This document shows, piece after piece, positions 11,391 to 54,182 of a DNA stretch of 64,000 nucleotides. The number at the start of each line of letters is the position of its first letter. Positions within the stretch are counted from its first letter, which is position 1. Both the position numbers and the translations under genes were made by a program. A model generated the notes under the pieces. The model was given only the letters and a program-made list of their open reading frames with translations. It had not been told where the DNA came from and did not search any database. Origin of the DNA: Kudoa neothunni (lineage: Eukaryota; Animalia; Cnidaria); NCBI GenBank assembly GCA_964304625.1, contig OZ199840.1, positions 8,705,487-8,769,486 of the forward strand, in the 5' to 3' direction.

Positions 11391-11402
11391 AATAATGTGT
11401 AT

Positions 11403-14267: not shown

Positions 14268-17198
14268 CTAGTCATTTTTCTTTTTTCCGATGAAAAATGC
14301 GATTCCCCCCTATCAAAAGTACCACTCCTGCAACAGCTGATACGATTATTCTATCTATAAATTAAACAACTCAAATAACAAAAATTAATACATCATTTTC
14401 ATGTTTGACCTAAAATTAAAATTTCGTTATATTGTTATATACAATAATATAGTAGTAAAATCACTTTGCACTACTTTTTTCACCTAAAGAGAATAACAAT
14501 AAAAAAATAATTTTTAATTTATTTAATACCTTGATTTATTGCAGCGGTTCCGTAATATGTCGGATCAGACTCCAAGTATACGATTAAATGATAATTGTTT
14601 GATTCTGGCAAGTTATCAATGGTGAAACTTGCACATTTTGGAAACTTGGTGCATTTAGAATTCCGCACCATACATGATCTCACAATTAATTGTGATTTTG
14701 CACTTGTATTTTTCAATTCCCATTTACATTTTGACTTTTCGTTCACTTTTGTCGAATGATGAGTTTCCACTGTGAATGTAGTTCCATCTCGTGTTATTGA
14801 AACGTCTAATACTTTATTGGTGTCTGTTGGATTTTCTTTAGGTTTATCTAATCGTTGATTAATATGGATAAATTTGAAATTAAAATTTTTACTTGAAGGG
14901 ATATCAATTGTTTGTTGTGTAGATTTTCCTCTAGCAGTCACCAAAACTCTGTATTCATGGTTTGGATCGTAGTCGGTGTTGAATACAATAGATTTGCATG
15001 ATGGCATATTTTGACATGTCTTTGAAGTGATATCATTAGTTTGAGCAGTATTTGCTGTTGCTGTGCCACCTGCTCTAGCTATACTTACTATCTCTGATTT
15101 TGGTGTAATTTCAGAACTTTGAGAAGGTTGTGAAGTCTGTGAGGATGGATCGGGAAATGTAAGAGTAGGTGGATTAGTTGAGGCAGGGGCAGGGCACACA
15201 AATATCGATTCATAATCATTACCCTTTTTAATTTTTACATCGTATTCACACAGGGCTGGAGTTTTTGTCGACAATCGTGCATTCAATTCGAATCCTTCCA
15301 TATTAAATCTATGAGTAATTGATAGTGTATCCAACTCTAATGAAATTTTATTTAATAAAAATGAAACAAAATTAACTTACGAGTTTCAACTCCACTATAA
15401 ATATGTTCCGCATAATCTTTATGAGCAACTACTTTAATGTCATATTGAACACCAGGTTCTAGACCAATGATTTTTTTAGTATCCTTACAGAAGCCTCTAC
15501 ATGGAATGCTGTCTTCGCATGACGCAGGATAGAAATTATCTTTTCCTGTCAAACTTATATGATATTCACATGTCGGTTCTGTTTCTTTATCATCGCGTAC
15601 CGTACCATCTACAGCTTTAAGGGATGCATCAGATGCTGTTGTTGTTGGAGTTGTAGCTAAATAAGTCTTCCCACTGCCGTTTTCTTAATAAATATTAATA
15701 TTGTCTGAAACATTAAATATATTTACTCGTTCTGTAAAATATCTTTTCTTTAAAATTTGTAGGGTTGGTAATTCCGGTTGCAGTTACTTCAATAATATAT
15801 GCCCTACCAGCATTAAGACCTTTTACGACTAATTCTGAGCCATCTTGCTTGCAATCTCCGTCAGTGGAGGAGGGACTTGTACTACTACCAGAAACACAAG
15901 TAGTAGTAGTCGACGTAGTCGGTTTAATACTGTCAGCGGCATAGTGGGTGAGAGTAGGGGTTCCATTATTCTCTTTTAAAAGGTTTGAATTAAATGTAAC
16001 ACCAAAATTTGTATGAGATGACAATAATTCTTTGGTTTGCTCAGTAATGGCTGAAAAAATTAAAAAATGTTTAAACTTTTTCGTTAAACAATTACCGTAT
16101 TTATTTTGGATATAACCGTCATACGTTTTGTTAGAATGCATTGATAGCTTGTGATGCCTCGTTTGGATTATAACACTGTAAACCGATTTTGCTGCAGATA
16201 CTGTTAAAGTAACATTTTTACAGGGGGCATAGCATTCACCGTTGCTGTTACCACACTTTGATTCATATGCATCATTAACTGCAGTAGTCTCAGCATTTCT
16301 AACACGAAAGACACAAATTTCATGGGATGGGTTATTAGTAAATTTCAAAGTGATTTTTTTGTCATCTTCAGTATTTTTAGTAACATAAAATTGTGGCTTG
16401 TAAATTTCAATGTTGTCTCTCATGTACACATTAGGCAAGTTATAAAAAAAGCTTGGATAATTTTCACATCTCACTTCATAATGAGGAATTAGGAGATCGA
16501 AATCAACCGTATTTGCTTCGTTTTCAGTGATACAATTAGTGTTGGCCGTTCCTTCATTGTATTTCGTATCCTTATAGTGGATTGGACAGGCCACTGGTGT
16601 GTATGTTTTTGCACACAATTTGAGCTTTTTTGAATTGTCAGTGGAAATTAAAATTTGTGGATTTACAAGCAATGCTAAATTTAAATTAAATGTTAATAAA
16701 ATTTAATATCACAGTTACGTATTACTAAACCAAACACTTTGCCACCCTTAATTTGAGTTTGAGTATTAACAGCCCCTGCGTTAATTCCAGCAAAAATGTA
16801 AATGAATTGAGTTCTGGGAGAAAGTACGTTAAAACCTATCTTTATATCATCCCCAGCACACTTTCTAACACATTTATTTTTTGATGCTTCATCAGTATCG
16901 TTATTAGGACATCCATCTATTTCACCAAGCACAGCAGGAGGGGCCCCATTAGACTTCATGATACGGCAGGTTTTACCTTCTGTAGTATATGTACTTCCTT
17001 CTAAAATAAGTTGGACCTTGAATATATTTGCAGTAGTATCTTTCACAATTTGGTATTTCACAGTTTCGGCCAAAGAAGTTTGAACTGGGACTACTTTCTC
17101 ACAAAGTTTTTGTTTAATGAGAACTATAAATAATTTTTTAAATATGAGGAACCAAATAAATTACTTAATATGTAAAATACGTTTAGAACATTCATCAT
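14268..17198 (-). CDS. Family copy 2; intact except one extra base in the TM exon
   Basis: 34-nt exon 1 at 17165-17198 (MMNVLNVFYIL|ILIKQKLC), same 10-exon layout as copy 1. C6 at 14305-14310 versus C5 in the other four - copies shifts the end to IGGNRIFHRKKEK*. Confidence 0.8.
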
Positions 17199-18097
17199 TA
17201 GAGATATTATATGAAGAAGAACGTATTGTTAAAATCCAAAATATCGGTTGTATATGATGAATAAAAGATCATGCTAATTAATGAATACTTTCATAAGTAT
17301 TATTTAATTCGTATTAATAACTAATTGACGACAAGCCAACGTATGATTATTAACAATAAGATATAGAATTTAATATAAAATTGGCGTTATTAAGCTACTA
17401 AGTATAAAGAAATATTATAAATATTTTTCCTGCAAAACTTGAAAATCTCGAAATGTATATCAGTTTACTTTTAAAACTACAAGATCTCATTCGTCCGAAT
17501 ATATTTAGATTCTTGCATCAAAAAAGAAGAAACAATATTTCAAATATGATAAACGTAATTTTTTAAAAGATATGTTATTCTAATTATATTCAAGCCACAA
17601 CTATAGGATATATCTGATCTGACATTATTGATCTTCCAATTAATATCTATTCTCTATACTAAAATTATTTAAATAATAAAATTTTATTTTTAGGCACGAA
17701 TATAAATAAAAATTCTATTTAATTTTCCATTCCTTAAACAAAAATATAAAATACTTATTTTTTAAAATATTTTTTATTACTTATATTCATTCTCTTTGCT
17801 TTGTTAAATATGAATGACGATTCCAAACTACACGTTCTATTTCAAATATTTCCCCAGTAATACTAAAATAAAAACCATTTTTTATTTATTATCATTTATA
17901 ATACAATAAATAACTTTTAGTTATTAATAATCATATGTCAAACGAGGAAACTAATTCCTCTATATCAATGGACTGTATTAATCGGGTTAAAGTACTATTC
18001 TTGGTAAATAATATAAACTTACCGGTTATAAAATTACATTATAAATAGTTTGATGTAAATCGAAACAATAATCAATTAAGTTGTATTTAATTTTAGA

Positions 18098-19460: not shown

Positions 19461-19655
19461 AATTAAATTTATTTAATTAGTATTAACAACTTATGAATTA
19501 CTTTATTATTTGATTCATGTTTACTATTAAAAATAGCCAAAATGTTATATATTTTCTGTAATTTTAATACAAAAACCAAATATAACTATTATTAATCTAT
19601 TATTTTAAATCTTAAAGTTTTTATTAATAAATATTTTGATTTAATCTACTATATA

Positions 19656-22009
19656 TGTTACAGGCATTGTATGAAATTCAAACAATATATAGAATGCCTA
19701 GGCAAAGTGTATAATATATGCGTTCTTACATACTCTATCTAGGCATTCTATACAATGACTAGTTCTACTTCATGCAATTTATAAAAAATTAATTCCCACC
19801 AAAAAGATGTTCGATTCGTCGTTTTCACGTGATAATAGTCCTTGGGTTTAGACGACGCAACGTAAGTTTGTGCTCATTGCTGTGTGTTTGTAAACATGAA
19901 CGGAAAAAATTCAAATGTAGCATTTGAAAAAAAATCCCGTTTGATTGAAATGAGAGAACTTTTCCTTACAGAGCTATCAAAAATGCGAACCACTGGTGCT
20001 AAAAATTGTGTTTTCCTTACCGACGCTAGTTATGAACGACTAGTGAATGATGTGATAAGAGCAAAGCTAACAACAAAGAAAGGATCACGGGATTATTGGC
20101 TTCTGAAACGCTACGATGTGATGACGATAGAGGAAAAAAGAAAGTTGCTCTATCCTGTCAAAGAAAGGGTCCGTTCTATTCAGTTTTACGTCAGTGATTC
20201 TGAATTATTTGATGTTATTCATGACGCTCATGTAGACATTGGACATGGAGGACGAGACAGAATGTTAAAGGAGCTTCGACCAAAATTTAAAAACATTACC
20301 AGTCGTGATATTGAATTGTACATTCAACTTTGCCAGGCATGCCAGAAGAAACAAAAAGGCATGAAGAAAGGCATTGTAGTGAAACCGATGGTATTTTCAG
20401 ATTTTGATTCCCGCTGTCAGGTGGATCTAATTGATTACCGACCCCATCCTGATAAAGAATACAAATTTATAATGGTATATCAAGATCACCTTACTAAGTT
20501 TGTTGTTTTACGGGCTATTAAATCAAAAACAGCTGAAGAAATGGCGTTTAATTTAATAGACATATTCACATTACTGGGAGCTCCACCGATATTGCAGTCA
20601 GATAACGGTCGAGAATTTTCCAATAAGGTGATCACAAACCTGAAGAAATACTGGCCGACATTAAAGATTGTTCATGGAAAGCCGCGACATTCTCAAAGTC
20701 AGGGTAGTGTTGAGCGAGCTAACCAAGATATCGAAAACATGTTGTCTACTTGGATGCAAGACGAAAAAGCCAACAAATGGAGTGAAGGAATACTTTTCGT
20801 CCAACTTATGAAAAATAGAGCCTTCCATTCTGGGATTCAAAGAACACCTTACGAAGCTCTCTTTGGCTGCAAAGTTAAAGTTGGTCTCACTACGTCTTCC
20901 ATATCTCAAGATGTCTTAGTCGGTATACACACTGAAGAAGAATTAGAAATAATAATTGAAAATATGCACACAATAGAGTTAGATGTGAACCATGTGACCG
21001 AAGAAATGAGCATTATTCCACAGAACCCTGTTGAGATTTCTGAATACGAAATGGAAAAACAATGCTACAATGAAGAGATGTGTACTCAAGAATCTGAAAA
21101 TTCCTCCGTGTGTTGTGTATGCTTAAAAGCAAGTACTGGTGCACATACTTGCATTAAGTGTGGCCGAAGCGTCCATATAATCTGTGGGGAAAGTCTAAAA
21201 GACTACAATGGTGAAACAATTGAAGGTTATGGTATTGATATCTGCTGCATTATTTAACATTGAAAATGTGGAAAAACATAAGAAGCTGTCTATGTTGAGC
21301 CTAGAGATTTAAGCAAAAAGAATGAAAATGGCTTCGGAAAAAAATTTTTCTCCCGCAACTTTGGGCGATACCGTGCGCATTCCTATTCCTGATGTGGACA
21401 AGGGACGTGGTGACCCGCGAAATGTGTTAGCGGTGGTAATGTACCTTACGGGAGATGGTTTTTACCGACTTGGAACTAATCAAGAAAGGTTAAAGCAGCT
21501 ATACGCAAGATCACAATTTAGCATTTGCCAAAAGCGATTTATAAAAATTGTTGATGTCAATGACCACGAAATACCTCTACGCTCTGCTGCTACTTCTCAA
21601 TCAACAGGAAGTGGTCAAGGATTTTTAAGGTGTATGTGTAAAACTAAGTGCCAAAATAACAAATGCCTTTGCCTCAAGAAGAATTTACAATGCAATTCAA
21701 AATGCCATTCTAGTCTTCCTTGTTGTAATAAATAATAAGTTATTGTTGTGCTTCGTTTGTGATTTTTCTGAAGGCTAATTTCGACTTCTTCTTGCGCTTC
21801 ATTTTTGATTATTAACCATTTTTTGACGAATATCTTTTTAAATTTGCATATTTGCACATTGCCTGAAGTAGAACTAGTCATTGTATAGAATGCCTAGGTA
21901 GAGTATGTAAGAATGCATGTATTATACACTCTGCCTAAGAATGCTAGGCATTATACACATTAAATAGGCATTCTATATACATCCTGAATTTCATACATTG
22001 CAGGTAACA
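19656..22009 (+). mobile_element. Ginger-like DNA transposon with KRBA2/SCAND3-type rve integrase
   Basis: Termini TGTTAC...GTAACA with ~120-150 bp imperfect TIRs (19726-19777 mirrors 21858-21912). Flanks TATA/TAAA (possible 4-bp TSD with one mismatch). No LTR, gag or RT. Confidence 0.85.
19884..21735 (+). pseudogene. Integrase-type DDE transposase (HHCC zinc finger, rve core, Cys-rich C-terminus), disrupted near 21257-21322
   Basis: HDAHVDIGHGGRDRM..CQAC; QVDLID; ILQSDNGREF; SQGSVERANQ; C-terminal CMCKTKC..CLC...CNSKCH. Confidence 0.85.
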
Positions 22010-23640
22010 TAAAAATGAAGTGTCCGAGCGTGTCTGCCAATACGCATGTGCGTCAAAATTGTTTCCTTATAGAGAGACAGTTATGAAATTTTTTAAAAAT
22101 CACAATGTTTCAAAAAATCTTTTAATCGTTATCACACTACAAAATGTTCCCAGCATTGTTTAGAAAATGGTGATTTGGTCGATTCAAAGTTTGTTAAACG
22201 GATTACCTGATCACAACCATAGAATTAACACCTGCGTATGTCATGGTAAGGGTCGGTTGAAGTTAATTTTCCCCTTTATATGTTCCATCAAATGTTGGTT
22301 AACTGCTGTCATCTGACTTTTTATATAAATTTAGTATGTAAATTTTGGTGTTCGTGCAGATACACTCTCTATGTCGGGAGTTTTAACGTATTTGACGTGA
22401 TAAACACATTTTGAAGGTTCTATTAATGGTTTTAGAAATGGTAAAAAATCTATATATGATTCATGAATAACGAATTAATGAAGAACATTAAAATTGCATT
22501 GATTGAATCATTGTAATACAAGTATTGTGTCCGTAGATCTCATTAAAATCGTCCTTTAAGTCTAACTTACCGTGATTAAATTCAATGCAGATGATTTTAC
22601 TTTTATTTCACCCAGTTATTTAAATTGTTTATGTTGAAGTTGACACGTTTTGCGGTTTTTTATGCGAAAAAGTGCGTAAAGCTCTTGCGGGGCCAAGGGA
22701 TATTAATTTGAGTAATAAAAATTTATTTTCGTTTATTTTCTTGTCTCTATATCTTTTTATCTTATTTACCGCCTCAAAACCACGAAAAAAACTCTGAGTC
22801 GGATCAAAAATAACGTTTTAGATATCACTTTAACGGGATTTACATAATCCGGGAATGCAAAAAATACTACACTGAACTTTAATTATTTAGAGTTGGCGCT
22901 GGGCCACGAAATTTTCAAATGAACGCCGGAATTGGTACACTCCTTCACAGAAATAATTGTAATTTAAATTTCATATTCCCAGTCATTCAAATATAATGCT
23001 TGGAAATTATTTTAGTTTGACTCCATCTATATTTATGGGTTAATTTGAAATATTAATATCTTTTTAGAATGTTAATACGAAGTTTTTCAGTGCTTAATAC
23101 TCCCAGACAAAGCTGGGCGGTTCTCACTAGTAATATCATACAGAGAGTGGAGAAGGACCTATTCTTATTTCTTGATAACTAAAATCAAGTCAATAGTTGG
23201 TAGGTTAAAATGGTTCATTATCATAATATTGACGCCCCCATTGCCTTTATCTATTTGTAATATTGAATTATTTGGATTTTTTTCTTCTATGCTCCTCTGA
23301 AATATTCCTAACATTATTTTTATAATAAGAAAAATATAGAATTAATCGGATTATTTTACAAAAAAAGCCATCAATAATCAATAGCGAGGCCACCGATTTC
23401 TATAATTTTGAATTTGATTTAATAAAAAATTAAATATAGTATTTTATTACTTGTTAAAGGCTAATTAACAGAATTTGTTGAACTTATTATGTTGGAAAAA
23501 ATGAAAAAATGAATTTAGAACAAATTTGTTTATATTTTATTTTATCTTTTGTTGTTAGAGAAGTAAAAAATCTCAAGAGTATATATACATTATTTTCCTT
23601 TAAATTAAGATTGAGGTCGATTCTTAAAGTATTGAATTTA

Positions 23641-26600
23641 GGCAGTGTCTATTTTTCCAGACGCGCTTTTTCTCTTAAAATAATAATTCATTCGCTACAA
23701 TTTTTTCCTAAAAATATCTTTTATGAATGCAGAATATAAATTTAGTTTCATTTATCTTTTAATTAATAATTAGGTATCAAAATACATCGAGGATATTTTA
23801 AACTCATTCATAAGTATTATTATAAATGACATTAAATTTTTATAAATCTGTATTATTTATATAATTAATCTAATTTTATGTGTTATAACAGCATAAACGA
23901 GTAAAATACCCTCTAGCGTGCGGTTGTAACTTTGATAGTCGCGAGTAGAATCACTATGGAAGGAGAGTCTGATCAAACACTACTAATTCAGGATATTACA
24001 TCTGAACCTATGGTCGAAAATGCATTTACAAACTTTGAAAAGGCTAAAGAATTCATGGATGAGTACTCAAAGCGGAACAACTTTTGTTACTGGATCCGAG
24101 ACTCTAGAAAAATCTCAACTGCCCTAAAAAAATTTGATAGAGACATGAACTCTGATCTTGTTTATTATGAAGCCACTTTTTGTTGTGTTCATGGTGGTAA
24201 AAATGTAATCATCTATATAAACATTGATGTAATTAATTTGAATTCAGATACAATCTAAAAGTGCTGGGAAGAGAAAAATTAACAGCCATAAACGTGGTTG
24301 CAATTTCTTCATTACACTGCGAGTTCCTAAAAACATGAACATGTTAGTTTTTAGAAAATTGGATCATACTCACAGCTGCAACAGAAATGAGCATTTTAGG
24401 GATTTTTTACCAATGAATAGAAAATTAGATGAAAAAAGCAAGAACCTTATAAAAAATGTTCATTTTTATGATGGAAATCTAAAAAAAATGTTTGTCTGAT
24501 ATTTCGGAGGTGTTTAATTCAATAAAAAATTCTCACCCAATTGCAACTATCGAAATATTGCACAATGATTCCAATGAAATGACTGGAATATTTTTCCAAG
24601 ACCTTTACATGAAAAACGCTATTATAAAATTTCCCGAACTAGTATTTATGAATTCCATATATATATATATATATATATATGTATTAATCAATAATCGAAT
24701 GTCATTGTATATGCGCCTGTTTATTTATTTGACTTTGGGCAAAGTTAAACAAGAGCTATTGCTCTTTTATTTGAGGAGCGTACCGTGACTGTTACCTGGT
24801 TATGTCAATCTCTACTTAAACATAATGAGGAAATGTCAACCAAAACAGTTTGTTTCATTACGGATAAAGACATGATTGAAAGAAACTCTATAAGATCTGT
24901 ATTTCCTAACGAAAGTACAAACTTATGCCTGTACCATGTCTTAAGAACATTTGGGAGAGAGATCTCTACATTAAGAATGGGAATAAACAAAGCTGAAGGA
25001 ATAACTGCCTTAGAGTTGATTCAAAAGCTTTATTATATCAATGATCCAAAAATTTATGAAAATTACCATGAATTGTTAAATAAGACATGTAACAAAAAAT
25101 CATTAGTTATTATAATAAATCTTGGGATCCAATCAAACATAAATGGTGCCCGGCATATATGAACCTAAAGGGTACTTTTTAAATAGAACAAATAATCGAT
25201 TAGAATGCATAAATTCCAAAATTAAACAAATCATAAAAAAATTCTCAACAATTGAAGTCTTTTTCAGCGATCTGCTTATTTATTTATCAAGTATGAGGAC
25301 TGAGCGTGAGAGTAAAGCAGTTAGAGAGTGGACAACCCAAACTGTTGAGAAATTAAATTCAGACATTAACGAACAATATAAAACATTGTTGACTTCATAT
25401 GCGTATAATATTATGCAGGATGAAATAAATAATCATATCGAATCCTATGCCAATCCTGATCCCAATAGTTGTACATGTTGTTTCTACGTAAGTATGGAGT
25501 TACCATGTAGGCATATTATTTACGCTAGAAAAATAATGACCAAAAATTTATATGAAGAGAAAATTTGTAATAAGAGATGGCACAAAGAATAATACCTGTC
25601 ATTTATTCAAATGACCAAAAATTTAGATCTTTAAAATCCTTCGTGTTGTGTGCAACCAAGTATTACAGAAATTTCGAGTCAGTGCCCTGTTCCGAATTCT
25701 GCTTTAAAGCGATACAGGGAGCTAGAAATTCGTTGTAAGAAAATAGCTTGGCTAGGGTCTGAAAAAACAGGGAGTCAATATAATTCATTAAAAAAGATTT
25801 TAGGTGAATTAATCTCTCTTATTTCCAATGGGGATTCTCTGGATAAGGTGACTATTTTTTCCACTATTCATATATCAACTTAATTTAGTTCAAGTTGACG
25901 TCTGAATCTGTCAACGAAAACAATCAAGAGATTTCAATCCCAACATGTAATTAGTGATATTGTCTTTAGTAGAATTTTTATTTCGTGTTTAGTTACTGAG
26001 GAATCACGATTAGAGAATGAGGATATACTAGAAGCAGTTAATGATAATGTTCCATCATCAATAATTGATATGGAGATCCCGAATATTGTAGATGATACCA
26101 CAACTAAAAATCCATCTTTGAAGGGTGTGTATCTTTTGTCCATTTTGCTAAATTCATAAAATTATAGGAATTAAGCTGCCAACAGTAGTGAAATTGAGAG
26201 GTAGACCAAAAGGTGTATTTCAAACAGTTATTGGTTTAAGAAAAAAAAGAAAATTATGATTATGGTAATGATGATAGTAGTAATAATAACAACACCAATA
26301 TCGATATATCATATTCAAATATAATTTTATGTGGAAGTTAAACAGTCCCAATTATTTGGCGTTGCAATACAAGATAATTTCAAACATTTATTATTTAAAG
26401 TAGAATACTCAACATTTTATTAAATTTTAGTGGTGTATCAATCAGCTGATAAAAACATTTACCTAATTATAAAAGTTTTAAATACGAATTGGCCAAATAG
26501 TTTTACTTTACTGTATTTTCATTTGGATATTATGGATACAAATTAGTTATGTTAAAATTCGTCACTGAATTAATGAAACTAAATTTATATTCTGCATTTA

Positions 26601-26683: not shown

Positions 26684-27162
26684 TTGAATTTAATATTTTC
26701 TTTCATTTTAATTATAACCTTAAAGAAAACCTAGACAATATTACCAAATATTTTTATAACTACCTTAATCCCCCAAAACTCTCGACTGAGATTAAAGTGT
26801 ATTAATTTAGAAACATAATAATTATTTGAAAATCGATCAATAAAATATAACATTATTTGAGTAAAAGTTAGTACTAACTATACCAACATAACTCTCAGCA
26901 AACGATTGCGTAGAGCCCAGGTTTAATCCGTAATGTTTTTCTATCATGATTAATACGAAATTTCTGTTTCATACTTAATTGTTTGATTTATGGCTAAGTT
27001 AATGTTAATTTATTTATGGGGGTTAGTGTTATGGATTACCTTAAATCAAAATGGCCTAAATCGCTCAAGGGTTGTCATGAGCTTGACAGAAAAAATAATT
27101 TTTTAAGTGAATATAAAGAATATAATTAATCAAAGTAATAATAAATAAAAAAAATGTTGGGT

Positions 27163-37800: not shown

Positions 37801-38169
37801 TTATTCTAAAACGATTGAATAATATGTTTATCTTTAATTGAGAGCCTTCCATCGAGAAAATCTATTGACTTTTAATCAATACTGTATGTTTTCAAGCTAA
37901 AAGCACATGCACATCAATAGTTAAATCAATTTTTTATCTACGGTTGATTGGTTTTTTTGAACTAAGTGATGTTTGTCTGAAGGAGAATGTATAGATTGAT
38001 TTAAGAGTTTAAAAATCTTATTAAAAGAGTGAAACCCTAATTTCGCAGTAACAGACGTTCGGTGAAAATTAAATAAGGATCCTTCATAAAATTATCGGAA
38101 AGAAGTAATTTGGGCATTATCCTTATAGATGTCGAAATTTTAATTTTTACCTATTTCGTCCTTTATCTA

Positions 38170-38797: not shown

Positions 38798-39786
38798 TAA
38801 TATCATACAGAGAGAGAGAGAGAGAGAGCAGAAGGACCTATTCCTATTTCTTGTAAACTAAAATCAAGTCAATAATTGGTAGATTAAAATGCTTCATTAT
38901 CATCATATTTACACCTCCATTGCTTTTATCTATCTGTAATATTGAATTATTTGGATTTTTTTCTTCTATGCTCCTGTGAAATATTCCTAACATTATTTTT
39001 ATAATAAGAAAAATATAGAATTAATCGGATTATTTTACCAAAAAAGCCATCAATAATCAATAGCGAGGCCACCGATTTCTATACTTTTGAATTTGATTCA
39101 ACAAAAAATTAAATATAGTATTTTACGACTTGTTAAAGGTTAATTAACAGAATTTGTTGAACTTATGTTGGAAAACAATGAAAAAATTAATTTAGAACAA
39201 ATTTGTTTATATTTTATTTTATCTTTTGTTGTTAGAGAAGTAAAAAATCTCAAGAGTATATATACATTATTTTCCTTTTGAATTAAGATAGAGGTCGATT
39301 TTTAAAGTATTGAATTTAATATTTTCTTTCGTTTTAACTATAACCTTAAAGAAAACCTAGACAATATTACCAAATATTTTTATAATTACCTTAATCCCCA
39401 AAAACTCTTGACTGAGATTAAATTGTATTAATTTAGAAACATAATAATTATTTGATAATCTATCAATAAAATATAACATTATTTGAGTAAAAGTTAGTGC
39501 TAACTTTACCGACCTAACTCTCAGCAAATGATTGCACAGAGTCCCGGTTTAATCCGTAATGTTCTTCTATCATGGTTATACGAAATTCCCGTTTCATAAT
39601 TAATTGTTTAATTTATGGCTAAGTTAATGTTAATTTATTTATTGGGTTGTTGTTATGGATGACTTTAAATCAACATGACCTAAATCGCTCAAGGGTTGTC
39701 ATGAGCTTGACAGAAAAAATAATTTTTTAAGTGAATATAAATAATATAATTAATCAAAGTATTAATAAATAAAAAGAATGTTGGGG
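38250..39786. repeat. Segmental duplication, flank type B (3' flank of copy 4), paralogous to ~22570-23640 joined to 26693-27162
   Basis: Colinear similarity once the MULE is removed. Confidence 0.9.
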
Positions 39787-42705: not shown

Positions 42706-43276
42706 TGTAGTCTTATTGTGGCGATAAGAATATAATCATTTCACAAATCGGTTGAATAGGGCGAATACGATTTGTGCTATTCAATGAATGTTTTTGAGGG
42801 TATTATTGAATTCATATTAATTATTTGTAGGTCAAAAAAACAAGTTATGATTAATCATGGAGGTTATGAAATTAATTATATATTTTTTTAAAATATAAAA
42901 TAATTATTCAATATTTTCAGTTTATTTCTTTTGGAAAAATTTATATAAATTCCATTAATTTGAAAGATGATGTATTATAAATGTCCTGAATACCTATTAT
43001 TCGAGGAATTAGTTAAACCTACATAGCACACAATGCAAAAAAATACTAAATTTTTAATTTGATAAATAATTATGTTTGATAATAGTAGAAAATATTCAAT
43101 ATTATGGAACTTGTTTAAGTCTGTTTCCCTACTAAATCATAATTAAGGTAATAACACAAAATGAAATTTTTGATTAATTCATTTTTTTAATATATATATA
43201 TATATATATGAAGTATTAATTAATATAGGAGGTTTTTTCCGTATAACCCCAGGTACTTTAAATAGTTACTGAAATT

Positions 43277-45416
43277 TCACCTCTGTTCCTCTTGCTTAGG
43301 AACTCTTGTGCAATGGCTTAACTCTGAAAGGAACTATGAGGAAAAACAAAAGAAAAATTTCGGATAATTTTCTCAAGTCATGGAAACGTGATGTTTTTTC
43401 ATCCATTTTTGATTTCAGTGGGGATTTTATATTAGGCTCGTGCGTTTCAAAAAAATACTACGCTGTAAACCTCTTGTCTAGTCAACACCATGATAACTCA
43501 ATCCATGACGTAGACTGAAAGACACCCAACATCACTATGCACCACAAAAAAACAAATGATGGTGTTGATATGGCTGACAAATTGACCGCCCAATATTCCT
43601 ACAGCAAACCTACGAGAAGATGGCCATTTAAAATTATTTATGGACATGCTCGGTATAGCTTGCTCAAGTACCTATATTTTGTGGATAAAAAACATCCTGA
43701 GTGTCAAAAAAGTAAGTAGAAATAGGATACAATGTTTTATACGGCAGTTATCCATTGAATTAGCACGAGAACATGAATCATGGCGCCATAATAACCAAGA
43801 AAGATTGCCAATCAACATTAAGCATGGATTTCGTCTATTTTATGGAAGTATCAACAATGATTCCTCGTCCCTCATATCGAGTTCTTCGCATGCATTAAGT
43901 AGGAAACGATGTTTTTTTTGTCCAATAAACCAAGACAAAAAATCACAGATATTGCGTTTCAATTGTCAAAGATTTGTTTGCGCCAAACAAATTTTAAACA
44001 TAAGAACATTATTTATTGTATGGACTGCGACAAAAAATTCCTATATAATTGAAAAAGGTATGTGTCTGTTTTTTTATATTCTCAACCTTGTGTGAATATA
44101 ATGGCGTCGTCAATATATCCAGTAAAACATTGAAGCTAATTTTTTTAAATATAAGACACAATTAATCTTTACGTCACATAATTTTTTTTATTTTTTTATT
44201 ATAGATATTGCATTTTGATTCAACCTATGCTTAATTCGCTGATTAAATCCAAAATAAACCTTAAACATCTGAATCGATAATTGGAATAGTTTAAAATGTT
44301 TTAAAACTATATGATTTTGATTCATACAATGATTTCACAAAATACGTGAATAACTGAAAAAAAGAAGTAACGTTTTATTCTCTAACCGTAAACTATATGG
44401 GATTTTAAATAATTTTTTTAACTATACACGGAAATAAATCTTTCAACATTTTTATATACATATTTAAACCTCTCGTTTAAAAAGTTTGAGCGTTTAAATT
44501 TTTTAAAACTTAAGATCACACGCAGAAGAAATTTTGTTAGGAAAATATTAATTATAATGAACAATTAACTGCCTGTAATGTTTATTGTACTTGAAATAAT
44601 AAGATATTTTTCCCTCGTATGTTCGTTTGAATGATTCATTAATAAATGGATATATAAACGTTTAAAAAATTTGAATCACTCTCAAAAAAGGTTGTTAAAG
44701 AACATAACTATTGATATACAAAATTTTATGATATTACACTTAATCAAACTAATTTTTTCATTTGTAAAATTGTTGAAGTTTCATCCGCAAAACCAAAAAT
44801 TAATTTGATACATTTCGTTTTTCAAATAAATATAAGGATCGAAGTTTAAAAAAGTGGAAATAAACTCGACTGAAAAATGGAAGCTTAGAACTAAAATAAA
44901 TTGAATTATAATGTCAGTAAATAATAATGAAGCGTGTAAATTTTAAAACGCAACAGACTATGACTGAAGAATTCAGCAAACAGCAAAAATTGCAAAATCC
45001 TGCGTCATTTGAGATCGAAAATCTGTTTATATTAACCACGATCGAGTGTTCCGTTTTGATGCGTGGCTTTTTCCTGATAGCGTATATCACGCTAATCTTT
45101 TGTTTTTTTAAGTTTTCTGATTCGAGAATAAATTATATCTACAAAGCAATCTCCACTGTTGAAATATTACCGATTCAAACACATGCATTTCATCTTGTGT
45201 AAATAATGTTGCAGCTAACAAACAACGCCATTTTTTGTAATGAAGGAAATAAAAATTCAGTTAGATTTTGGTTTTAATTAGCTTAAAATTGTATAATAAA
45301 TTAATTGATAATAATTCAATCGCAGTAAAACTTAGTTATCATTGATTGCTTCTGGGGTCACTGAGTGCCCACCACCACGCCAGGGGGTAATTTTTTGACA
45401 CTCAGTACTAGGAAGG
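43277..45416 (+). mobile_element. 5'-truncated piggyBac-like remnant (duplicate of 11770-13815)
   Basis: Same motifs (ORFs 43306, 43537, 43640 with RKRCFFCP..C..FVC). Right end AGGAAGG|TTAA at 45416. Confidence 0.8.
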
Positions 45417-45853
45417 TTAAATAACATCGTTTGTATAAATATCACGCTCCCCAAGAAATAAGCTCAAAAACAAAGAGACAATTAAGAAGTACACGTATTC
45501 TTAAAAACCATCCAATGAAATCAATAATCATTAATGAATATAATTATTTTTAAATTATACGGTCAAATTTAATAATAATAACCACTAAAAATATGTTATT
45601 TCATATTGAGTTATTCAGTAGTGCATCTCTACCCTGAATACTTTTAGACATTTTTTTCACTTTAATACAGTAAATATATTGAATATTAAGTTGATTTTAT
45701 ATAGACTTAAAACTTATATGATTTCATTAGAAAGCAAGAATCAAATAAAGTTAACAAAACTAGTGCTATTTTAAAAATTTGATTATGAATAAATTATTGT
45801 AAGAAAATATAAATAATAATTAATTAATATAATAAATAAAAAGAATGTTGGGG

Positions 45854-48780
45854 CTAGTCATTTTTCTTTTTTCCGATGAAGAATGCGATTCCCCCTATCA
45901 AAAGTACCACTCCTGCAACAGCTGATACGATTATTCTATCTATAAATTAAACAACTCAAATAACAAAAATTAATACATCATTTTCATGTTTGACCTAAAA
46001 TCAAAATTTCGTTATATTGTTATATACAATAATTTGGTAGTAAAATTACTTTGCACTACTTTTTTCACCTAAAGAAAATAATACAAAAATAATTTTTTAA
46101 TTTATTTAATACCTTGATTTATTGCAGCAGTTCCGTAATATGTCGGATCAGACTCCAAGTATACGATTAAGTGATAATTGTTTGATTCTGGCAAATTATC
46201 AATGGTGAATCTTGCACATTTTGGAAACTTGGTGCATTTAGAATTCCGCGCCATGCATGATCTCACAATTAATTGTGATTTTGCACTTGTATTTTTTAGT
46301 TCCCATTTACATTTTGACTGTTCGTTCACTTTTGTCGAATGATGAGTTTCCACTGTGAATGTAGTTCCATCTCGTGTTATTGAAACGTCTAATACTTTAT
46401 TGGTGTCTGTTGGATTTTCTTTAGGTTTATCTAATCATTGATTAATACAGATAAATTTGAAACTAAAATTTTTACTTGAAGGGATATCAATTGTTTGTTG
46501 TGTAGATTTTCCTGTGGCAGTCACCAAAACTCTGTATTCATGGTTTGGATCGTAGTCGGTGTTGAATACAATAGATTTGCATGATGGCATATTTTGGCAT
46601 GTCTTTGAAGTGATATCATTAGTTTGAGCAGTATTTTCTGTTGTTGTACCACCTGCTCTAGCTATTTTTAGTGCGTCAAATCTTGACTTAATTAGAGAAT
46701 TTTGAGAAGGTTGTGAAGTCTGTGAGGATGGATCGGGAAGTGTAAGAGTAGGTGGATTAGTTGAGGCAGGGGCAGGACACATGAATATCGACTCATAATC
46801 ATTACCCTTTTTAATTCTTACATCGTACTCACACACAGCTGGTGTGTTTGTCGATAATCGTGCATTCAATTCGAATCCTTCCATATTAAATCTATGAGTA
46901 ATTGATAGTGTATCCAATTCTAACGAAATTTAGTATTAACAAGATAAAATAATATTGATTTACTAGTTTCAACTGCCTTATAAATATGATCCGCATAATC
47001 TTTATGAGCAACTACTTTAATGTCATATTGAACACCAGGTTCTAGACCAACGATTTTTTTAGTATCCTTACAAAAGCCTCTACATGGAATGCTGTCTTCG
47101 CATGACGCAGGATAGAAATTATCTTTTCCTGTCAAACTTATATGATATTCACATGTTGGTTCTGTTGTTTTATCATCGCGTACCGTACCATCTACAGCTT
47201 TAAGGGATGCATCAGATGCTGTTGTTGTTGGATCTGTATCTAAATAAGTCTTTTGAGCGCCACTTTCTTAATAAATATTAATGATTTTAATATTATTTTG
47301 TATATTCACTCGTTCTGTAAAATATTTTTTCTTTAAAGTTCTGTGGATCAGTAACTGTTGACATTGCAACTTCAAACATGTAAGCCCTTCCACTATCAAG
47401 ACCGGTTACCACTAATTTAATACCTTCTGTTTTGCAAGTGCTTCCATTTCCAGACGTTGTGCCACTACCAGCAGCACAGTTAGTAGTACTTGGTGCGTCT
47501 GGCGTAAAAGTGTCGGCAGGATAATGAGTGAGAGTAGTGGTTCCGGCAGTAACTTTAAAGGGCGAAGAATCAAACTTGACACCTACATTAGTAAACTCTG
47601 ATAATAATCCCTCGGTTGGTTCAGTAATTGCTAAAAGAATTGATCATATTTATGTAAGTGATTTCATTCGTTATTACCGTATTTATTTTGAGTATACCCC
47701 TCATAATTTTTATCAGATTTTATCGTTAAATCGTGATGTCTTGTTTGGATTACGACACTGTAAACCGATTTTTCTGCTTTGACAGTTAATGTAACATTTG
47801 CGCAAGGGGCGTAGCAATCACCATTTTGGTTACCACAATTTGACTCATATGCGTCACTTGAACCAGTTTGTGTAGCATCTTTAATACGAAACACACAGAT
47901 TTCGTGAGATGGATTATTAGTAAATTTTAAAGTAACTTTTTTAGTATCTGCAGAGTTTTTCGTGATTATAAAATTGTGGTTTGTAAATTTCAATTCCGCT
48001 TTTCATGTATTCATTGGGCATGTTATAAAAAAAGCTTGGATAATTTTGACATTTCATTTCATAATGAGGAATAAGAAGATCGAAATCGAGGATATTCGCT
48101 TGACCGTCAGTGTTACAACTATCAGCATTTGTACCTGCTGCGTACTGCATGGCTTTGTAGTGAATGGGACAGTCTACAGGAGTGAATGTTTTGACACATA
48201 ATTTAAGTTTTTTTTGAGGTGTCAAAGGAAACAGCAAATTTCGGATTAACAAGCAATGCTAAAGTTAATGTAATTATTTATTTCATTAATAATAAGTTAC
48301 GTGTTGAAAAACCAAACATTTTTCCTCCTGTTAATTCGTTCGCATCTTTTTCGGCTCCGTCCTTGGTCCCAGAAAATATGTAAACGTACGAAGTTCTGGG
48401 AGAAAGAGCATTAAAATCCAACTTTAAATCGTTTCCAGCACAAACTCTAACACATTTATCGCCGGAACGGGCAGGTTCTCTTCCGGTAGGGCAATTACTA
48501 ATTTCATTTAAAGTAAGTGCATCGCCCGCTTTATCAGATTTCCTGATGCGACACATCTTATTGGCGGTAGTATAAATACTCCCACTTAAAACAAGTTGGA
48601 GTTTGAATGGATTATCACCCGTATCTTTCACAATCTGATAATTCACTATTTCCGTTGGAATGGTAGGAACATTTTCATTGGAGAAGGTTTGGTCGATGAA
48701 AACTATAAAAAAACAATATGGAAAACATAAAAAAATCTAAAATTACTTAACGTGGAAATAATATGAAAAACAAGCGACAT
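45854..48780 (-). CDS. Family copy 5; two apparent +1 frameshifts; most diverged N-terminal half among the - copies
   Basis: Exon 1 at 48747-48780 (MSLVFHIISTL|IFIDQTFS). Extra bases at 48208-48215 (T8) and ~47966. TM/tail as in copy 4. Confidence 0.75.
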
Positions 48781-51266
48781 TAATGATGTTTAATGCAGCT
48801 GATGGTATTATTTAATATTAAAATAATTGCATGAATGGACGAATATGTTATATTGCTTACCAATGAATGCCTACCGAAGAATTATTAAATTCTTCATTAT
48901 CAGTTGACTTCATCAAATGAATAAACTCTATTACATAGTATGCATCTAATTTAATTTTCATTGGTCCATATTAAAATAAAAACCAAAATTGACCAATAAT
49001 ATTTATATATGAAGTAATTTAGCCGAGAACAGGCTTTTGAAACACAATAAGTTGCAAAATTATATTGTAGAAATTTTATGGAACTTAACAATATCTAGAA
49101 CTGCCTGATCATATAAAACATTATGGATTAAAAATTAAATGAATACTTTAGTGGATACATTGGTTAATATAACTGTTTAATCGGGTCTAATTGAGTTTGA
49201 TTTATGTAAAAAATTGTTTGATTCCGAACACTAATCCTATTGATAAAAGCTTTCTTAAACTGCAAAACAAATTGTATATTTTTTACAATTAAAAAAATTC
49301 CGTTTGTGTTATAAAATCAAAAAAGTATACATAAACATTCTAAAAGTATTTTACACACCCCTTGTCCTATTATTTACATCAATACTGAGATTCCCAATAT
49401 GAAACATTAATTATGCGTCATGATATAAGTACATGTTAATCAAGCTTAACTAAGTTCAACTTTATATTTAAAACTGAAAATAATTACAATACTGAAAAAT
49501 AAACAATACAAATAAGTTGATTTGGGAAAAAATGAATACTTACATATCTCGAATTTTTACAAATTATTCCATTTTAGGAAACCAAAAAATATAAATTAGA
49601 GTAATTAAGAATAGTCACAAGTAATGAAATATTAGCTAATAGAATAATAAACTAAAAAAATCAATCTGAATAATAATAGCAAAATTATTTAATTTTATAG
49701 TTTATTATTTGTAAATTGGTAAAGTTTCAATATCGATATTCTTGTTTAAGAGTAGTTAATAATCAATTAATTAAACAAACCTCAGTATTTAAATATTCCG
49801 ATGTGCATGTTTTAAACATCACGAATAATTTTTTAACCTGATATCACATATCCATTGATTTATTTAATTATTTTAAAATTAATTTTGGTATAATCTTTAT
49901 ATGAAAATATTTTTTGTACGAATTAGAAGCATCTCGTGTGGTTTTAGCTCGAACGTGAGATTGATAACAAGAATTATTTTAAATTTTTATATTATTTATA
50001 CAAATAAAAACCTTATTTAAATATAAATACATATATATTAAATTAGTTAAGGTAAGAATTAAACAGAAAAATAAATATCGCGATATTGACCATCAAAGAT
50101 TTCGAACGCAAATATTCGATGGTATATGGATGGTGACAATTATTATTTACCATATAATATACATATAAATATAATATCAACTTACACTCTTCTAATAAAT
50201 TATATTCAAGAACTAATTCATCAATTAAAAATATCACGTAATCTTTGGTGTATTGCAAACGAGACGGATAATTCAAACGGGATAATCGCTAGCCGCTTAT
50301 AAAATGTAACTAGGACAATCAAAATGTAAAAATAATTGATAATTCAATTATTTTAAAGTCATATTTAGGTGCTATGTTACTAATGTTATAAAGTTTATAA
50401 AGTACGAATTAAACTTTCTACATATTGATTAATTTAATTTTCGTCGCGATATTACGTACTACCCTTAAGTTAGTTTACATAAATTTATAATTTATAAACA
50501 AATATAAACGAACAATTTTGTTATTATAAATTCCTGAGCTTAGGTAAATAGTTCAAATTATGTTTTACACAATTATACTTATTATTATATTGTTTTAAAG
50601 GAAGGACTCTATATCACGGTAACTTATAGGGATCGGGGACATGTTGCGCAACATCGAGATCTTATTGTGATTTCTAGAAATGACCATCGCCAGTCTGGAA
50701 AATATGACATGGTTTTATTTATTCTGCTTCTATTATGTCGATTAATAATGAAATTTGATATAGACTAAACGCGTGTAACGTAGTTTTTATATTATTTAAT
50801 ATTATCTTATTTACCTAGGTATGAGTAATGTGAGTTCAACACACAATAAAGTTCTATGAATATTCTAAAATTTTCTGGTTAAATTTTTGTAAAATGTATA
50901 ATATTAATATTAAATAACTACGATATATATTGATTTAAATGCAATTTAGATTACTTTAATAATATTTTTTGTGAATTATAAAAACTAATTTTATCACGGA
51001 TGGATGACACTTGAAATGTCACTAGGAGTATTTATCATTGTGTCTTATAAATGTTTGTATTTAAAAGGAACCATAAATCATTAGCTATATTCAATCCAAA
51101 GATAATTAGGTTATCTTCATGAGGAGAGAGTTTTCCAAAAAAAAATGCTTGTGTTTAAAAAGAGAGTAATTTAAGTAGTAAGTTATATAAGTGAAAATAT
51201 TGTTCTTTGGGGTAAAATTATAAAATTAATAAGCTAAGATATAAATAAATAGAGATGATATGTGGG

Positions 51267-54182
51267 TTAGTCATTTTTCTTTTTTCCGATGAAGAATGCG
51301 ATTCCCCCTATCAAAAGTACCACTCCTGCAACAGCTGATACGATTATTCTATCTATAAATTAAACAACTCAAATAACAAAAATTAATACATCATTTTCAT
51401 GTTTGACCTAAAATCAAAATTTCGTTATATTGTTTATATACAATAATTTAGTAGTAAAATTACTTTGCACTACTTTTTTCACCTAAAGAAAATAATACAA
51501 AAATAATTTTTAATTTATTTAATACCTTGATTTATTGCAGCAGTTCCGTAATATGTCGGATCAGACTCCAAGTATACGATTAAGTGATAATTGTTTGATT
51601 CTGGCAAATTATCAATGGTGAATCTTGCACATTTGGAAACTTGGTGCATTTAGAATTCCGCGCCATGCATGATCTCACAATTAATTGTGATTTTGCACTT
51701 GTATTTTTTAGTTCCCATTTACATTTTGACTGTTCGTTCACTTTTGTCGAATGATGAGTTTCCACTGTGAATGTAGTTCCATCTCGTGTTATTGAAACGT
51801 CTAATACTTTATTAGTGTCTGTTGGATTTTCTTTAGGCTTATCTAATCGTTGATTAATACAGATAAATTTGAAATTAAAATTTTTACTTGAAGGGATATC
51901 AATTGTTTGTTGTGTAGATTTTCCTGTGGCAGTCACCAAAACTCTGTATTCATGGTTTGGGTCGTAGTCGGTGTTGAATACAATAGATTTGCATGATGGC
52001 ATATTTTGACATGTCTTTGAAGTGTTATCATTAGTTTGAGCAGTATTTGCTGTTGTTGTGTCTCCTGCTCTAGCTATACTTACTACCTCTGATTTTGATC
52101 TAATTGCAGCATTTTGAGGAATTTGAGGAGAATTTTGAGAAGACTCGGGAGGACGTAGGAGTAGGTGGATTAGTTGAGACAGGGGCAGGGCACACAAATA
52201 TCGATTCATAATCATTACCCTTTTTAATTTTTACATCGTATTCACACAGGGCTGGAGTTTTTTGTTGCATTCAATTCGAATCCTTCCATATTAAATCTAT
52301 GAGTAATTGATAGTGTATCCAACTCTAATGAAATTTGATCTAATAAAAATAAAACAAAATTAACTTACGAGTTTCAACTCCATTATAAATATGTTCCGCA
52401 TAATCTTTATGAGCAACTACTTTAATGTCATATTGAACACTAGGTTCTAGACCAATGATTTTTTTTAGTATCCTTACAAAAGCCCCTACATGGATTGCTG
52501 TCTTCGCATGACGCAGGATAAAAACTGTCTTTTCCAGACAAACTTATATGATATTCACATGTTGGTTCCGTTGCTTTAACATTGCTTACCGCACCATCAA
52601 CAGCTTTAAGGGATGCATCAGATGCTGTTGTTGTTGGAGTTGTAGCCAAGTAAGTGTTTTGAGCGCCATTTCTTAATAAATATTAATATTGTCTGAAACA
52701 TTAAATATATTTACTTGTTCTATAGAATATTTTTTCTTTAAAATCTGCTGGGTTTGTGATTCCGATTTCAGCCACTTCAATAATATATGCCCTTCCAGCA
52801 TCAAGACCTTTTACGACTAACTTTGAGCCGTCTTTTTTGCAATTTCCACTACTACCAGTTATCGTACTACCGTCAGCACAAGTAGTAGTTGTTGCAGTTG
52901 GTTCAATACTGTCAGCAACGTAATGAGTGAGAGTAGGGGTTCCACTGTTCTCTTTTAAAAGTCCTGAGTTAAATGTAACACCAATAGCTGTGTAAGCTGA
53001 TAATAGTCCTTCTGTTGGTTCAGTAATCGCTAAATAAATTCATTATGTTTATACTTTTTATTTCGCTTTTTATTACAATATTTATTTTGGATATAGCCGT
53101 CATAGGTTTTACCAGTTTGTTCTGTTAAGATATGATGCCTTGTTTGGATTACAACGCTGTAGACCAATTTTGCTGCAGATACAGTCAAAGTAACATTTTT
53201 ACAGGGGGCATAGCAGTTCACCGTCACTATTACCACACTTCGATTCGTATGCATCATTAGCTGCGGTGGTCGCAGCATCTTTAACTCGAAAGACACAAAT
53301 TTCATGGGATGGGTTATTAGTAAATTTTAAAGTGATTTTGTTATCTCCAGTATTTTTAGAAACATAAAATTGTGGCTTGTAAATTTCAATGGTGCTTTTC
53401 ATGTATTCATTAGGCATGTTATAAAAAAAGCTTGGATAATTTTGACACCTCATTTCATAATGTGGAATTAAGAGATCAAAATCAACTGTATTAGCTTGGT
53501 TTTCAGTGTCACAGTTACCAACTTGTGTTCCATCGTTATATTTCATATCTTTATAGTGGATTGGACAGACCACTGGTGTGCATGTTTTTGCACCCAATTT
53601 GAGCTTTTTTTGAATTGTCAGTAGAAATAGAAATTTGTGGGTCAATAATTAATGCTAAATTTAAATTGATTATTAATAAAATTTAAAATCAAAGTTACGT
53701 ATTGCTAAACCAAACACCTTGCCACCCTTCGTTTGAGATTGTGTATTAACGGCCTCTGCGTTAGCTCCAGCAAAAATGTAAATATATTGGGTTCTGGGAG
53801 ACAACGTATCAAAAGCTATTTTTATATCGTCCCCAGCACATGTTCTAACACATTTGTTGCTGGATTCCCCTCCAGTGTTTCCCTCCGGACATGCGTTGAT
53901 TTCGGCAAATGCAATAGCTTCGTTATTTATATTAGATTTCCTGATGCGGACACGTCTTGCCTTTTGCTGTATAAGTACTTCCACCTAAGACGAGTTGAAC
54001 CTTTAATGGATCTGCAGCAGTATCTTTCACAATTTGATATTTCACAGTCTCAGTTGGGGCAGCAGGAACTGGGGATACTTCCTCACAAAGTTTTTCTTTA
54101 ATAAGAACTATAATAAATTTTATAAGTATGAAGAACCAAATAAATTACTCAATATGTAAAATACGTTTAGAACTATCATCAT
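51267..54182 (-). CDS. Family copy 6; multiple apparent frameshifts (pseudogene or consensus errors)
   Basis: Exon 1 at 54149-54182 (MMIVLNVFYIL). Indels near 53948, 53605-53611, 53216, 52459-52466, 52258-52266, ~52150 and 51632. TM/tail intact. Confidence 0.7.

Follow-up and report, generated by a model that had tools for sequence, protein, structure and literature searches.

How do the members of a tandem gene array come to have different nearest relatives from one part of the gene to the next? The question is raised by a stretch of 64,000 nt of the Kudoa neothunni genome (GCA_964304625.1, contig OZ199840.1, positions 8,705,487-8,769,486 of the forward strand), which we call the window and to which the coordinates below refer. 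It had been predicted from the letters of this stretch that the nearest relative of each copy changes along the gene, that no simple duplication tree can give this and that blocks are shuffled by segmental gene conversion or unequal crossover. Is a single tree really excluded? If so, is the exchange conversion, crossover or both, and could the mosaics have been made by the assembly? Does the exchange have any bearing on the surface of the parasite?

The window holds part of an array of at least seven direct paralogues on the minus strand, in the order cB, cA, c2, c3, c4, c5 and c6 within 66 kb. Two of these copies, cA and cB, lie to the left of the window, the array running on past its edge. 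The interval analysed, 14268-54182, extends exactly from the stop codon of c2 to the ATG of c6. The genes c2 to c6 share an architecture of nine exons encoding an FN3-like type I membrane protein of about 854 residues. The intact copy, c4 (39787-42705, CDS of 2565 nt, 854 residues), displays a signal peptide, an FN3-like ectodomain, microexons of 19 and 18 nt, a transmembrane helix and the tail KKKND. Together with splice sites, it served as the reference for exon projection onto c2 (14268-17198, ATG to stop in nine exons), c3 (27163-30098), c5 (45854-48780) and c6 (51267-54182); all are on the minus strand, as are the features described below unless stated otherwise. The frame of c2 is open apart from a 1-nt insertion at 14310 in the G run of exon 9. 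As assembled, the frame of c3 is broken near 29236 (exon 3) and 27939 (exon 6) and that of c5 at 48215 and 47956, with one in-frame stop in exon 6, whilst c6 carries eight frame-shifting indels. Seven of the eight fall where read contigs from runs X1 and X2 differ in length by 1 nt, so that the c6 breaks are probably consensus errors and pseudogene calls are unsafe; frame breaks in a low-coverage assembly are not evidence for a pseudogene unless reads support them. A further copy, c1 (5600-8446, plus strand), is inverted and diverged (about 50-70% identical) and sits inside the array yet outside the exchanging set.

The array genes form an orphan family of K. neothunni and are predicted to encode FN3-like type I membrane proteins. 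The published genome paper does not mention this gene family (PMC12239612). Searches and the fold model used single exons rather than the spliced protein. In Pfam no family passes for exons 2, 3-4 or 6, and no match to the fn3 profile was found; a word-index protein search with exons 3-4, limited by its length window, gave no hit, and a full HMMER protein scan returned only 16 short relatives, all at 49% identity or less. The predicted structure of exon 3 is all-beta with a pLDDT of 71.5, and Foldseek matches it to two-domain tandems with FN3 domains in NCAM, cytokine receptors and CD45, with E values down to 9e-5 and TM-scores of only 0.3-0.4. As modelled, exon 3 has an FN3-type beta-sandwich fold, and Atlas features point to NDNF/fn3. 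The family is large, with at least 125 loci scored from 652 candidates, many of them near chromosome ends; a location of the products at the cell surface is putative.

Along the gene the nearest relative of each copy switches four to seven times, giving tracts of about 160-450 nt. Sliding identities for c2 and c6 are 81-90% over the upstream flank, exon 1 and intron 1, as against about 60-70% for other pairs; the block in c2, which reaches the start of exon 2 (17032-17364), is 84.9% identical to c6 54036-54348, with the next best copy at 70%. From late exon 2 through intron 2 into early exon 3 the partner of c6 is c3 at 92-98% (block 53519-53856 with c3 29440-29793, 94.3%, next best 83.6%). 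In mid exon 3 c4 pairs with c2 at 91-92% (block 41636-41890, mid to late exon 3, with c2 16144-16341, 92.1%, next best 87%), and in early exon 6 with c3 at 98-99% (block 40481-40679 with c3 27857-28056, 99.5%, next best 94.9%). The 3' flanks combine c2 with c5 (80-97%) and c3 with c4 (74-96%), other pairs sharing about 40-60%. Intron 5 occurs in three types, one in c2, c3 and c6, one in cB and c4 and one in cA and c5. The centre of c5, comprising exons 3-4 (47246-48183), is only 70-73% identical to its array neighbours; its nearest relative at 82-94% is cD, a copy at C3:10.5 Mb, 1.75 Mb from the array. The exchanging set exceeds the window, taking in cA and cB on the left as well as the distant cD. 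The four pairings within the gene, the two pairs of 3' flanks and the intron 5 type of c2, c3 and c6 had all been anticipated in the original prediction, and the seven peptide markers that it named are found exactly in the copies stated. One of these, IYKAVET, given as common to c4 and c5, is present in addition in cA and cB outside the window.

A single duplication tree is statistically rejected. The PHI test gives z = -10 with p at the permutation floor, and for exons only z = -7.8 with five copies and -33.5 with seven. Parsimony segmentation yields 10 segments and a gain of 63 steps, the maximum in 200 site shuffles being 10. AU and RELL tests were applied to all 15 topologies and the AU-accepted tree sets of two segments do not overlap, since those for segment A all contain c4 with c5 and those for segment D all contain c2 with c4; the pairing in segment K, in the flank, rests on identities instead. 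In triplet walks, 321 of 504 triplets are at the permutation floor. The claim that the nearest relative changes along the gene is therefore borne out by identity profiles and by permutation and AU tests, and the claim that no simple duplication tree fits by PHI, segmentation and the AU sets. The blocks that copies have in common extend to introns and synonymous sites, so that no origin other than DNA exchange between paralogues is reasonable.

The flanks add a further level of mosaicism. On the 5' side the partners are cB and c5, cA and c4, c2 and c6, and on the 3' side cA and c6, c3 and c4, c2 and c5; no gene keeps one partner on both flanks, and the spacers pair as wholes. The 3' flank of c2 (11390-14267) is homologous to 42898-45853 in the c4-c5 spacer and that of c3 (26684-27162) to the 3' flank of c4 (39310-39786). 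Within the c4-c5 spacer a cA-type 5' flank, up to 42887, gives way to a c2-type 3' flank at 42898. That the partners differ on the two sides of every gene points to gene-internal unequal crossovers besides conversion, and on the sequence evidence crossover would be the cause of the hybrid flanks.

Homology also extends over two genes at a time. The segment from cB to cA matches that from c5 to c6 over 8.6 kb, with a core at 95-100%. This core is a block of about 4 kb (48400-52250) containing the 5' part of c5, the whole c5-c6 spacer and the 3' half of c6, and its counterpart in cB-cA lies 57 kb leftward at window positions -8400 to -4600. Read-contig depth over 48400-52250 is about two to three times that of the parts unique to c6. 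The possibility that the two segments are haplotigs was rejected, as the homology breaks off inside genes and the outer flanks are dissimilar. Apparent SNPs in the c5-c6 spacer and the c6 3' half are likewise not variants; they stem from cross-mapped contigs of the cB-cA block. On the left of the array the spacers run alpha-beta-gamma, on the right beta-alpha-gamma. One parsimonious reading is that a three-gene unit was duplicated and that two gene-internal crossovers then fused neighbouring genes, the products being c5, with a c2-like 3' end and a cB-like 5' end, and c6, with a cA-like 3' end and a c2-like 5' end; this would reproduce the spacer order. Since the blocks are not of one age (alpha 95-100%, beta about 86-95%, gamma about 77-89% identical), such a history cannot have been a single event.

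The 3' half of the gene behaves differently. From intron 4 to the stop codon (39787-41241 in c4, about 1.45 kb) all seven array copies are 91-96% identical (93.1% within the array), compared with 83-85% to the distant copies cD and cE. Values of dS are 0.3-1.5 in exons 2-4 and 0.07-0.17 in exon 6, whilst introns 1-3 are 65-74% and introns 6-8 91-97% identical, intron identities tracking those of the neighbouring exons. Introns and synonymous sites that follow the exons in this way indicate recombination, not selection, and since the 3' introns and silent sites vary no more than the coding positions, the uniformity is ascribed to array-local concerted evolution rather than to protein-level constraint. 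GC-biased gene conversion, sought by means of GC3, was not seen: GC3 is 0.25 for the homogenized exon 6, as against 0.22-0.31 for exons 2-4. Two processes can be told apart, an exchange of patches in the 5' half and a homogenization of the whole array in the 3' half.

The explanation we favour, with a probability of roughly 0.85, is that the copies evolve by ectopic homologous recombination, combining conversion-like patches, array-local homogenization and, as inferred from the flanks, gene-internal crossovers. Both alternatives offered by the original prediction find support, as tracts of 160-450 nt fit interlocus gene conversion in size and pattern and the changes of flank partner fit crossover. 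Unequal crossovers within genes would generate hybrid genes and alter copy number. The 5' half may stay diverse because exchange there is rarer, or because selection eliminates its products. The result is likely to be a series of variant ectodomains, each borne on the same membrane-proximal stalk.

Might conversion alone suffice, with all mosaicism and flank pairings due to non-reciprocal copying, some tracts of up to about 4 kb passing through spacers and no crossover altering copy number? Crossovers could be mimicked by long conversion tracts reaching into flanks, many short patches lie inside the genes and the block of about 4 kb at 95-100% spans a spacer and ends at non-homologous gene positions, which a single crossover does not explain. 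However, the swapping of partners between the flanks of every gene and the consistent pairing of whole spacers are what crossovers in misaligned genes yield directly, whereas conversion would require many long tracts that include flanks, and we judge it unlikely to have acted by itself. That the assembler made chimeras by joining paralogues or haplotypes where the 3' halves are nearly identical is very improbable. Such joins give blocks that are 100% identical, but most of the shared blocks are 84-98% identical and have substitutions of their own, and many breakpoints fall in the diverged 5' half, where paralogues at 60-80% identity are not confusable. No N occurs in the 94 kb examined, and pieces specific to c6 are present without substitutions in the X1/X2 contigs, which derive from the host sample and are short k-mer contigs. 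Under the host species label, neither DNA run X9 nor RNA run X10 gave parasite reads. What does speak for artefact is the local consensus, poor in that many 1-nt indels of c6 lack read-contig support, and the nature of the assembly, built from low-coverage HiFi data with haplotigs purged (PMC12239612). With such data, and a parasite population that is possibly mixed or diploid, individual copies may contain internal haplotype switches.

It may also be asked whether the exchange is programmed, an expressed copy being supplied by silent or broken ones in a donor-acceptor system of antigenic variation. The size of the family and its many members near chromosome ends would suit such a system, as would a distal part that varies on a proximal part that does not and the broken appearance of some copies, and antigenic variation is suspected in myxozoans, the mechanism not being known (bioRxiv 10.64898/2026.02.11.705288). 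Against this, omega is 0.14-0.55 and neither gene-wide positive selection nor diversifying selection at the exon-wide level was found. Partners are many-to-many and copying is not aimed at one acceptor, and the breaks in c6 are, as noted, probably consensus errors. The dilysine-type tail KKKND can act as an ER-retrieval signal and would then argue against surface display. RNA run X10 gave 0 reads, and very few parasite RNA reads are reported in the genome paper (PMC12239612). Programmed diversification is, in our view, distinctly unlikely and nothing here shows programmed antigen switching. A broader proposal sees in the array one part of a system by which a metazoan parasite varies its host-facing surface through recombination; it is tentative and unlikely. 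If it were true, hundreds of FN3-like genes would be engaged in ongoing exchange, assembling novel ectodomains on an unchanging anchor during an infection or from one infection to the next, and the mosaic antigen families of protozoa would have their animal parallel in myxozoans.

Myxozoans are economically important parasites of fish, K. neothunni infecting tuna muscle, and to our knowledge their host-facing molecules are essentially unknown. At this locus recombination is seen to be actively reshuffling members of a very large family of orphan membrane proteins, and a mosaic ectodomain with a uniform membrane-proximal half is the raw material that a variable surface would need. The array thereby offers a concrete gene set for tests of a variable surface in myxozoans. 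Candidate variable membrane-protein families are also described in the myxozoan Sphaerospora molnari, where VSP-like, RIFIN/STEVOR-like and ETRAMP-like families are proposed to serve immune evasion; the protein types differ, being CXXC-rich and VSP-like in S. molnari and FN3-like in Kudoa, and neither 'fibronectin' nor 'gene conversion' occurs in the text of that preprint (bioRxiv 10.64898/2026.02.11.705288).

Gene trees and orthology calls for the family will be unreliable unless made per segment. Mosaic variant-antigen families are known from the VSG genes of Trypanosoma, var of Plasmodium, msg of Pneumocystis and VSP of Giardia. With these the Kudoa family has in common a large, lineage-specific repertoire of membrane or putative surface proteins, in part clustered towards chromosome ends, recombination of segments among its members and conservation of the membrane-proximal part. 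It differs in that the FN3-like fold is unrelated, the organism is an animal, a cnidarian, and neither directional copying nor positive selection was found in the array.

The swapping of pieces as such is textbook evolution of tandem families, newly documented for this parasite and this family. Concerted evolution of this type is known from rDNA arrays, globins, opsins and KIR/MHC genes. The likeness includes direct, clustered tandem paralogues, a patchwork phylogeny in which the signal shifts along the gene, homogenized introns and silent sites, exchanged flanks with hybrid genes where the flanks change and homogenization confined to the array. Unlike the textbook cases, the Kudoa gene is a mosaic in its 5' half yet uniform in its 3' half, it belongs to an orphan family in a myxozoan parasite and its array contains an inverted, diverged member, c1, that has been left untouched.

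Self-comparison of the window reveals five repeats in direct orientation, each about 3.1 kb long, and these are minus-strand genes, here termed c2 (14268-17198), c3 (27163-30098), c4 (39787-42705), c5 (45854-48780) and c6 (51267-54182). The limits that the original prediction placed on a mosaic region, 14268 and 54182, coincide exactly with the c2 stop codon and the c6 ATG. The window also contains an inverted sixth copy on the plus strand, c1 (about 5600-8446), whose similarity to the others is only 50-70%. The gene model is based on the intact c4 and comprises nine exons, two of them microexons (19 and 18 nt), separated by introns of 37-60 nt with the ends GTAA...TTTAG. The coding sequence of 2565 nt specifies 854 amino acids, with a predicted signal peptide, a long ectodomain, one transmembrane helix and a five-residue tail, KKKND. 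This tail (39787-39801 in c4, with homologous ends in all copies) is the whole cytoplasmic part and a dilysine-type C-terminus. Should it direct retrieval to the ER, the proteins would be absent from the surface.

The assembly derives from yellowfin tuna HiFi data and is described as 40.2 Mb in three chromosomes with a GC content of 30.4%, a median intron of 49 bp and a mitochondrial contig of 18,219 bases; the data gave limited coverage, haplotigs had been purged and hardly any RNA reads could be mapped (PMC12239612). We count 40,260,978 bases in four pieces, three of 17,154,348, 12,040,071 and 11,048,340 bases and a fourth of 18,219 bases with a cox1 gene in which TGA is a sense codon.

A MAFFT alignment of c2-c6, profiled in gene orientation, bears out the proposal that the nearest relative of a copy changes along the gene. 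Copies c2 and c6 pair over the upstream flank, exon 1 and intron 1 (81-90% identity against about 60-70% in the others), c3 and c6 from late exon 2 to early exon 3 (92-98%), c2 and c4 in mid exon 3 (91-92%) and c3 and c4 in early exon 6 (98-99%). Intron 5 occurs as three types, all five copies are 96-100% identical from late exon 6 to exon 9, and the 3' flanks pair c2 with c5 and c3 with c4, as predicted. All seven peptide markers are present in exactly the copies to which they had been assigned.

That a simple duplication tree is inadequate, as originally argued, is supported by several tests. The PHI statistic for c2-c6 lies far under its permutation distribution (z = -10), and remains so with exons alone (z = -7.8 for five copies, -33.5 for seven). 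Runs of shared variable sites exceed shuffles in nine of ten pairs. When the 15 five-taxon topologies are compared by parsimony segmentation, 10 segments result and 63 steps are saved, against a maximum of 10 in 200 site shuffles. In AU tests every tree accepted for segment A unites c4 with c5 and every tree accepted for segment D unites c2 with c4, so that no one tree fits both. A 3SEQ-like walk reaches the permutation floor in 321 of 504 triplets, and the clear nearest relative of each window copy switches four to seven times, the tracts measuring about 160-450 nt.

The exchanging copies extend beyond the window. Within the 20 kb to its left are two further direct copies, cA and cB, both intact. 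Among the seven copies the 5' ends pair B-5 (99-100%), A-4 (89-95%) and 2-6 (86-89%), the 3' flanks pair A-6 (96-98%), 3-4 (91-93%) and 2-5 (81-96%), and additional patches link A-B, B-6, B-4 and A-5. In its centre, c5 shares only 70-73% identity with its array neighbours; the nearest relative of this part (82-94%) is cD, a dispersed member of the same subfamily that lies on the same chromosome at a distance of 1.75 Mb (L006:2200-5900, at 10.5 Mb of chromosome C3 of genome G000). The 5' flank of cD is of the cB/c5 type (90-97%) and its 3' flank of the cA/c6 type (91-93%), so it resembles one array unit with alpha-type spacers (defined below) on both sides. Another dispersed subfamily member lies at C3:8.35 Mb (L007:2250-5950).

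Two regimes are evident along the gene. Between the 5' flank and exon 4 the seven copies show mean pairwise identities of 63-81%; between intron 4 and exon 9 the values are 90-100%, except for intron 5 at 81%, and directly past the stop codon the mean falls to 61%. Intron identity tracks that of adjoining exons and dS is 0.3-1.5 in exons 2-4 against 0.07-0.17 in exon 6; the uniform 3' half therefore reflects homogenised DNA and not stronger protein constraint. This homogenisation is local to the array, since the 3' half is 93% identical within it and 83-85% identical to cD and a second dispersed copy, cE. Omega is 0.14-0.55 throughout, giving no sign of gene-wide positive selection, and no elevation of GC3 was found in the homogenised part. 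Although c1 sits within the array, its identity to the neighbouring copies remains at 50-70%, even across the region that is homogenised in the direct copies. Being close by is thus not enough for homogenisation, and divergence or orientation excludes c1.

In every gene the partner of the 5' flank differs from that of the 3' flank, and whole spacers pair consistently, which upholds the suggestion of unequal crossover besides conversion. The segment cB-spacer-cA aligns with c5-spacer-c6 over 8.6 kb; identity is 95-100% in a core of about 4 kb, made up of the 5' part of cB/c5, the spacer and the 3' half of cA/c6, and 63-97% in the gene parts beyond it. The c4|c5 spacer fuses a cA-type 5' flank (to 42887) to a c2-type 3' flank (from 42898). 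Its left counterpart carries, exactly at this junction, 13.8 kb with c1 and transposons (-2447 to 11390, negative values lying left of the window; the end of L004 plus the window start), including hAT-like ORFs at 9174-10751 and a repeat at 3387-4491. With spacer types labelled alpha, beta and gamma, the order is B-alpha-A-beta-2-gamma on the left and 4-beta-5-alpha-6-gamma on the right. This order would arise from duplication of a three-gene unit and two later unequal crossovers within genes. Such a history, which we infer from sequence comparison, predicts a hybrid c5 that resembles c2 at its 3' end and cB at its 5' end, and a hybrid c6 that resembles cA at its 3' end and c2 at its 5' end; copies of both kinds are seen. 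The unequal age of the blocks calls for several events. The long c2|c3 spacer holds a Ginger/SCAND3-like integrase ORF (Integrase_H2C2, rve, Znf_SCAND3) and a fragmented MULE/SWIM transposase (19884-21735; 23932-25592). A repeat at 22047-23077 reappears at 3427-4491, 38166-38784 and about 66090-66881.

Could chimeric assembly have created the mosaic? We consider this unlikely, because most shared blocks are 84-98% and not 100% identical and many breakpoints fall where paralogues are only 60-80% alike. The 94 kb examined have no gaps. The sequence occurs in one host sample only, whose X1/X2 runs are available as short k-mer contigs; X9 (DNA) and X10 (RNA), under the same species label, contained no parasite reads. 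Stretches specific to c6 are recovered in X1/X2 contigs without substitutions, and contigs cover the 95-100% block about 2-3 times as deeply as the c6-unique parts, which is what a genuine duplicate should show. Differing letters in the spacer and the 3' half of c6 were traced to cross-mapped contigs from the cB|cA block. The local consensus of this low-coverage HiFi assembly looks poor. Seven of eight frame-shifting indels in c6 (near 53950, 53611, 53216, 52672, 52466, 52153 and 51635) coincide with 1-nt length differences in X1/X2 contigs, and those at 53216 and 53948 lie in the c6-unique part, where a paralogue origin is impossible. These seven c6 frame breaks are probably consensus errors. 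Equal caution is due for c2, c3 and c5, with further frame-shifting 1-nt indels at 14310, 27939, 29236, 47956 and 48215, and pseudogene calls in this family require read support.

In this array, gene conversion and unequal crossover drive the concerted evolution of a tandem family. The process itself is well known; within the literature searchable, it is new for this Kudoa family and for myxozoans. The assembly paper does not contain 'gene famil' or 'paralog' and uses 'gene conversion' only for GC-biased gene conversion (PMC12239612). A 2026 preprint proposes VSP-like and RIFIN-like families in Sphaerospora molnari and states that the mechanism behind myxozoan antigenic variation is unknown (bioRxiv 10.64898/2026.02.11.705288). 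Those families are unrelated to the one described here, and nothing in the locus data shows programmed switching.

Protein searches and folding were run on single exons. Pfam recognised no family in these exons. Exons 3-4 are represented at no fewer than 125 scored loci among 652 candidates in the source genome, on all three chromosomes and many near chromosome ends. Only 16 relatives, short and at most 49% identical, were found elsewhere among 1.84 billion representative proteins. One of them, a predicted protein of 333 residues that is 49% identical to exon 3, is encoded on a 2.2-kb Logan contig of another public run, SRR33849685 (L001); the family is thus also present in one or more further samples, presumably from another myxozoan. 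The exon 3 model, predicted from an alignment of 24 paralogues, is all-beta with a pLDDT of 71.5. Its best Foldseek matches are FN3-containing two-domain tandems in NCAM, cytokine receptors and CD45, with E values down to 9e-5 but TM-scores of only 0.3-0.4. Language-model features point to NDNF/fn3, in agreement with these structural matches.
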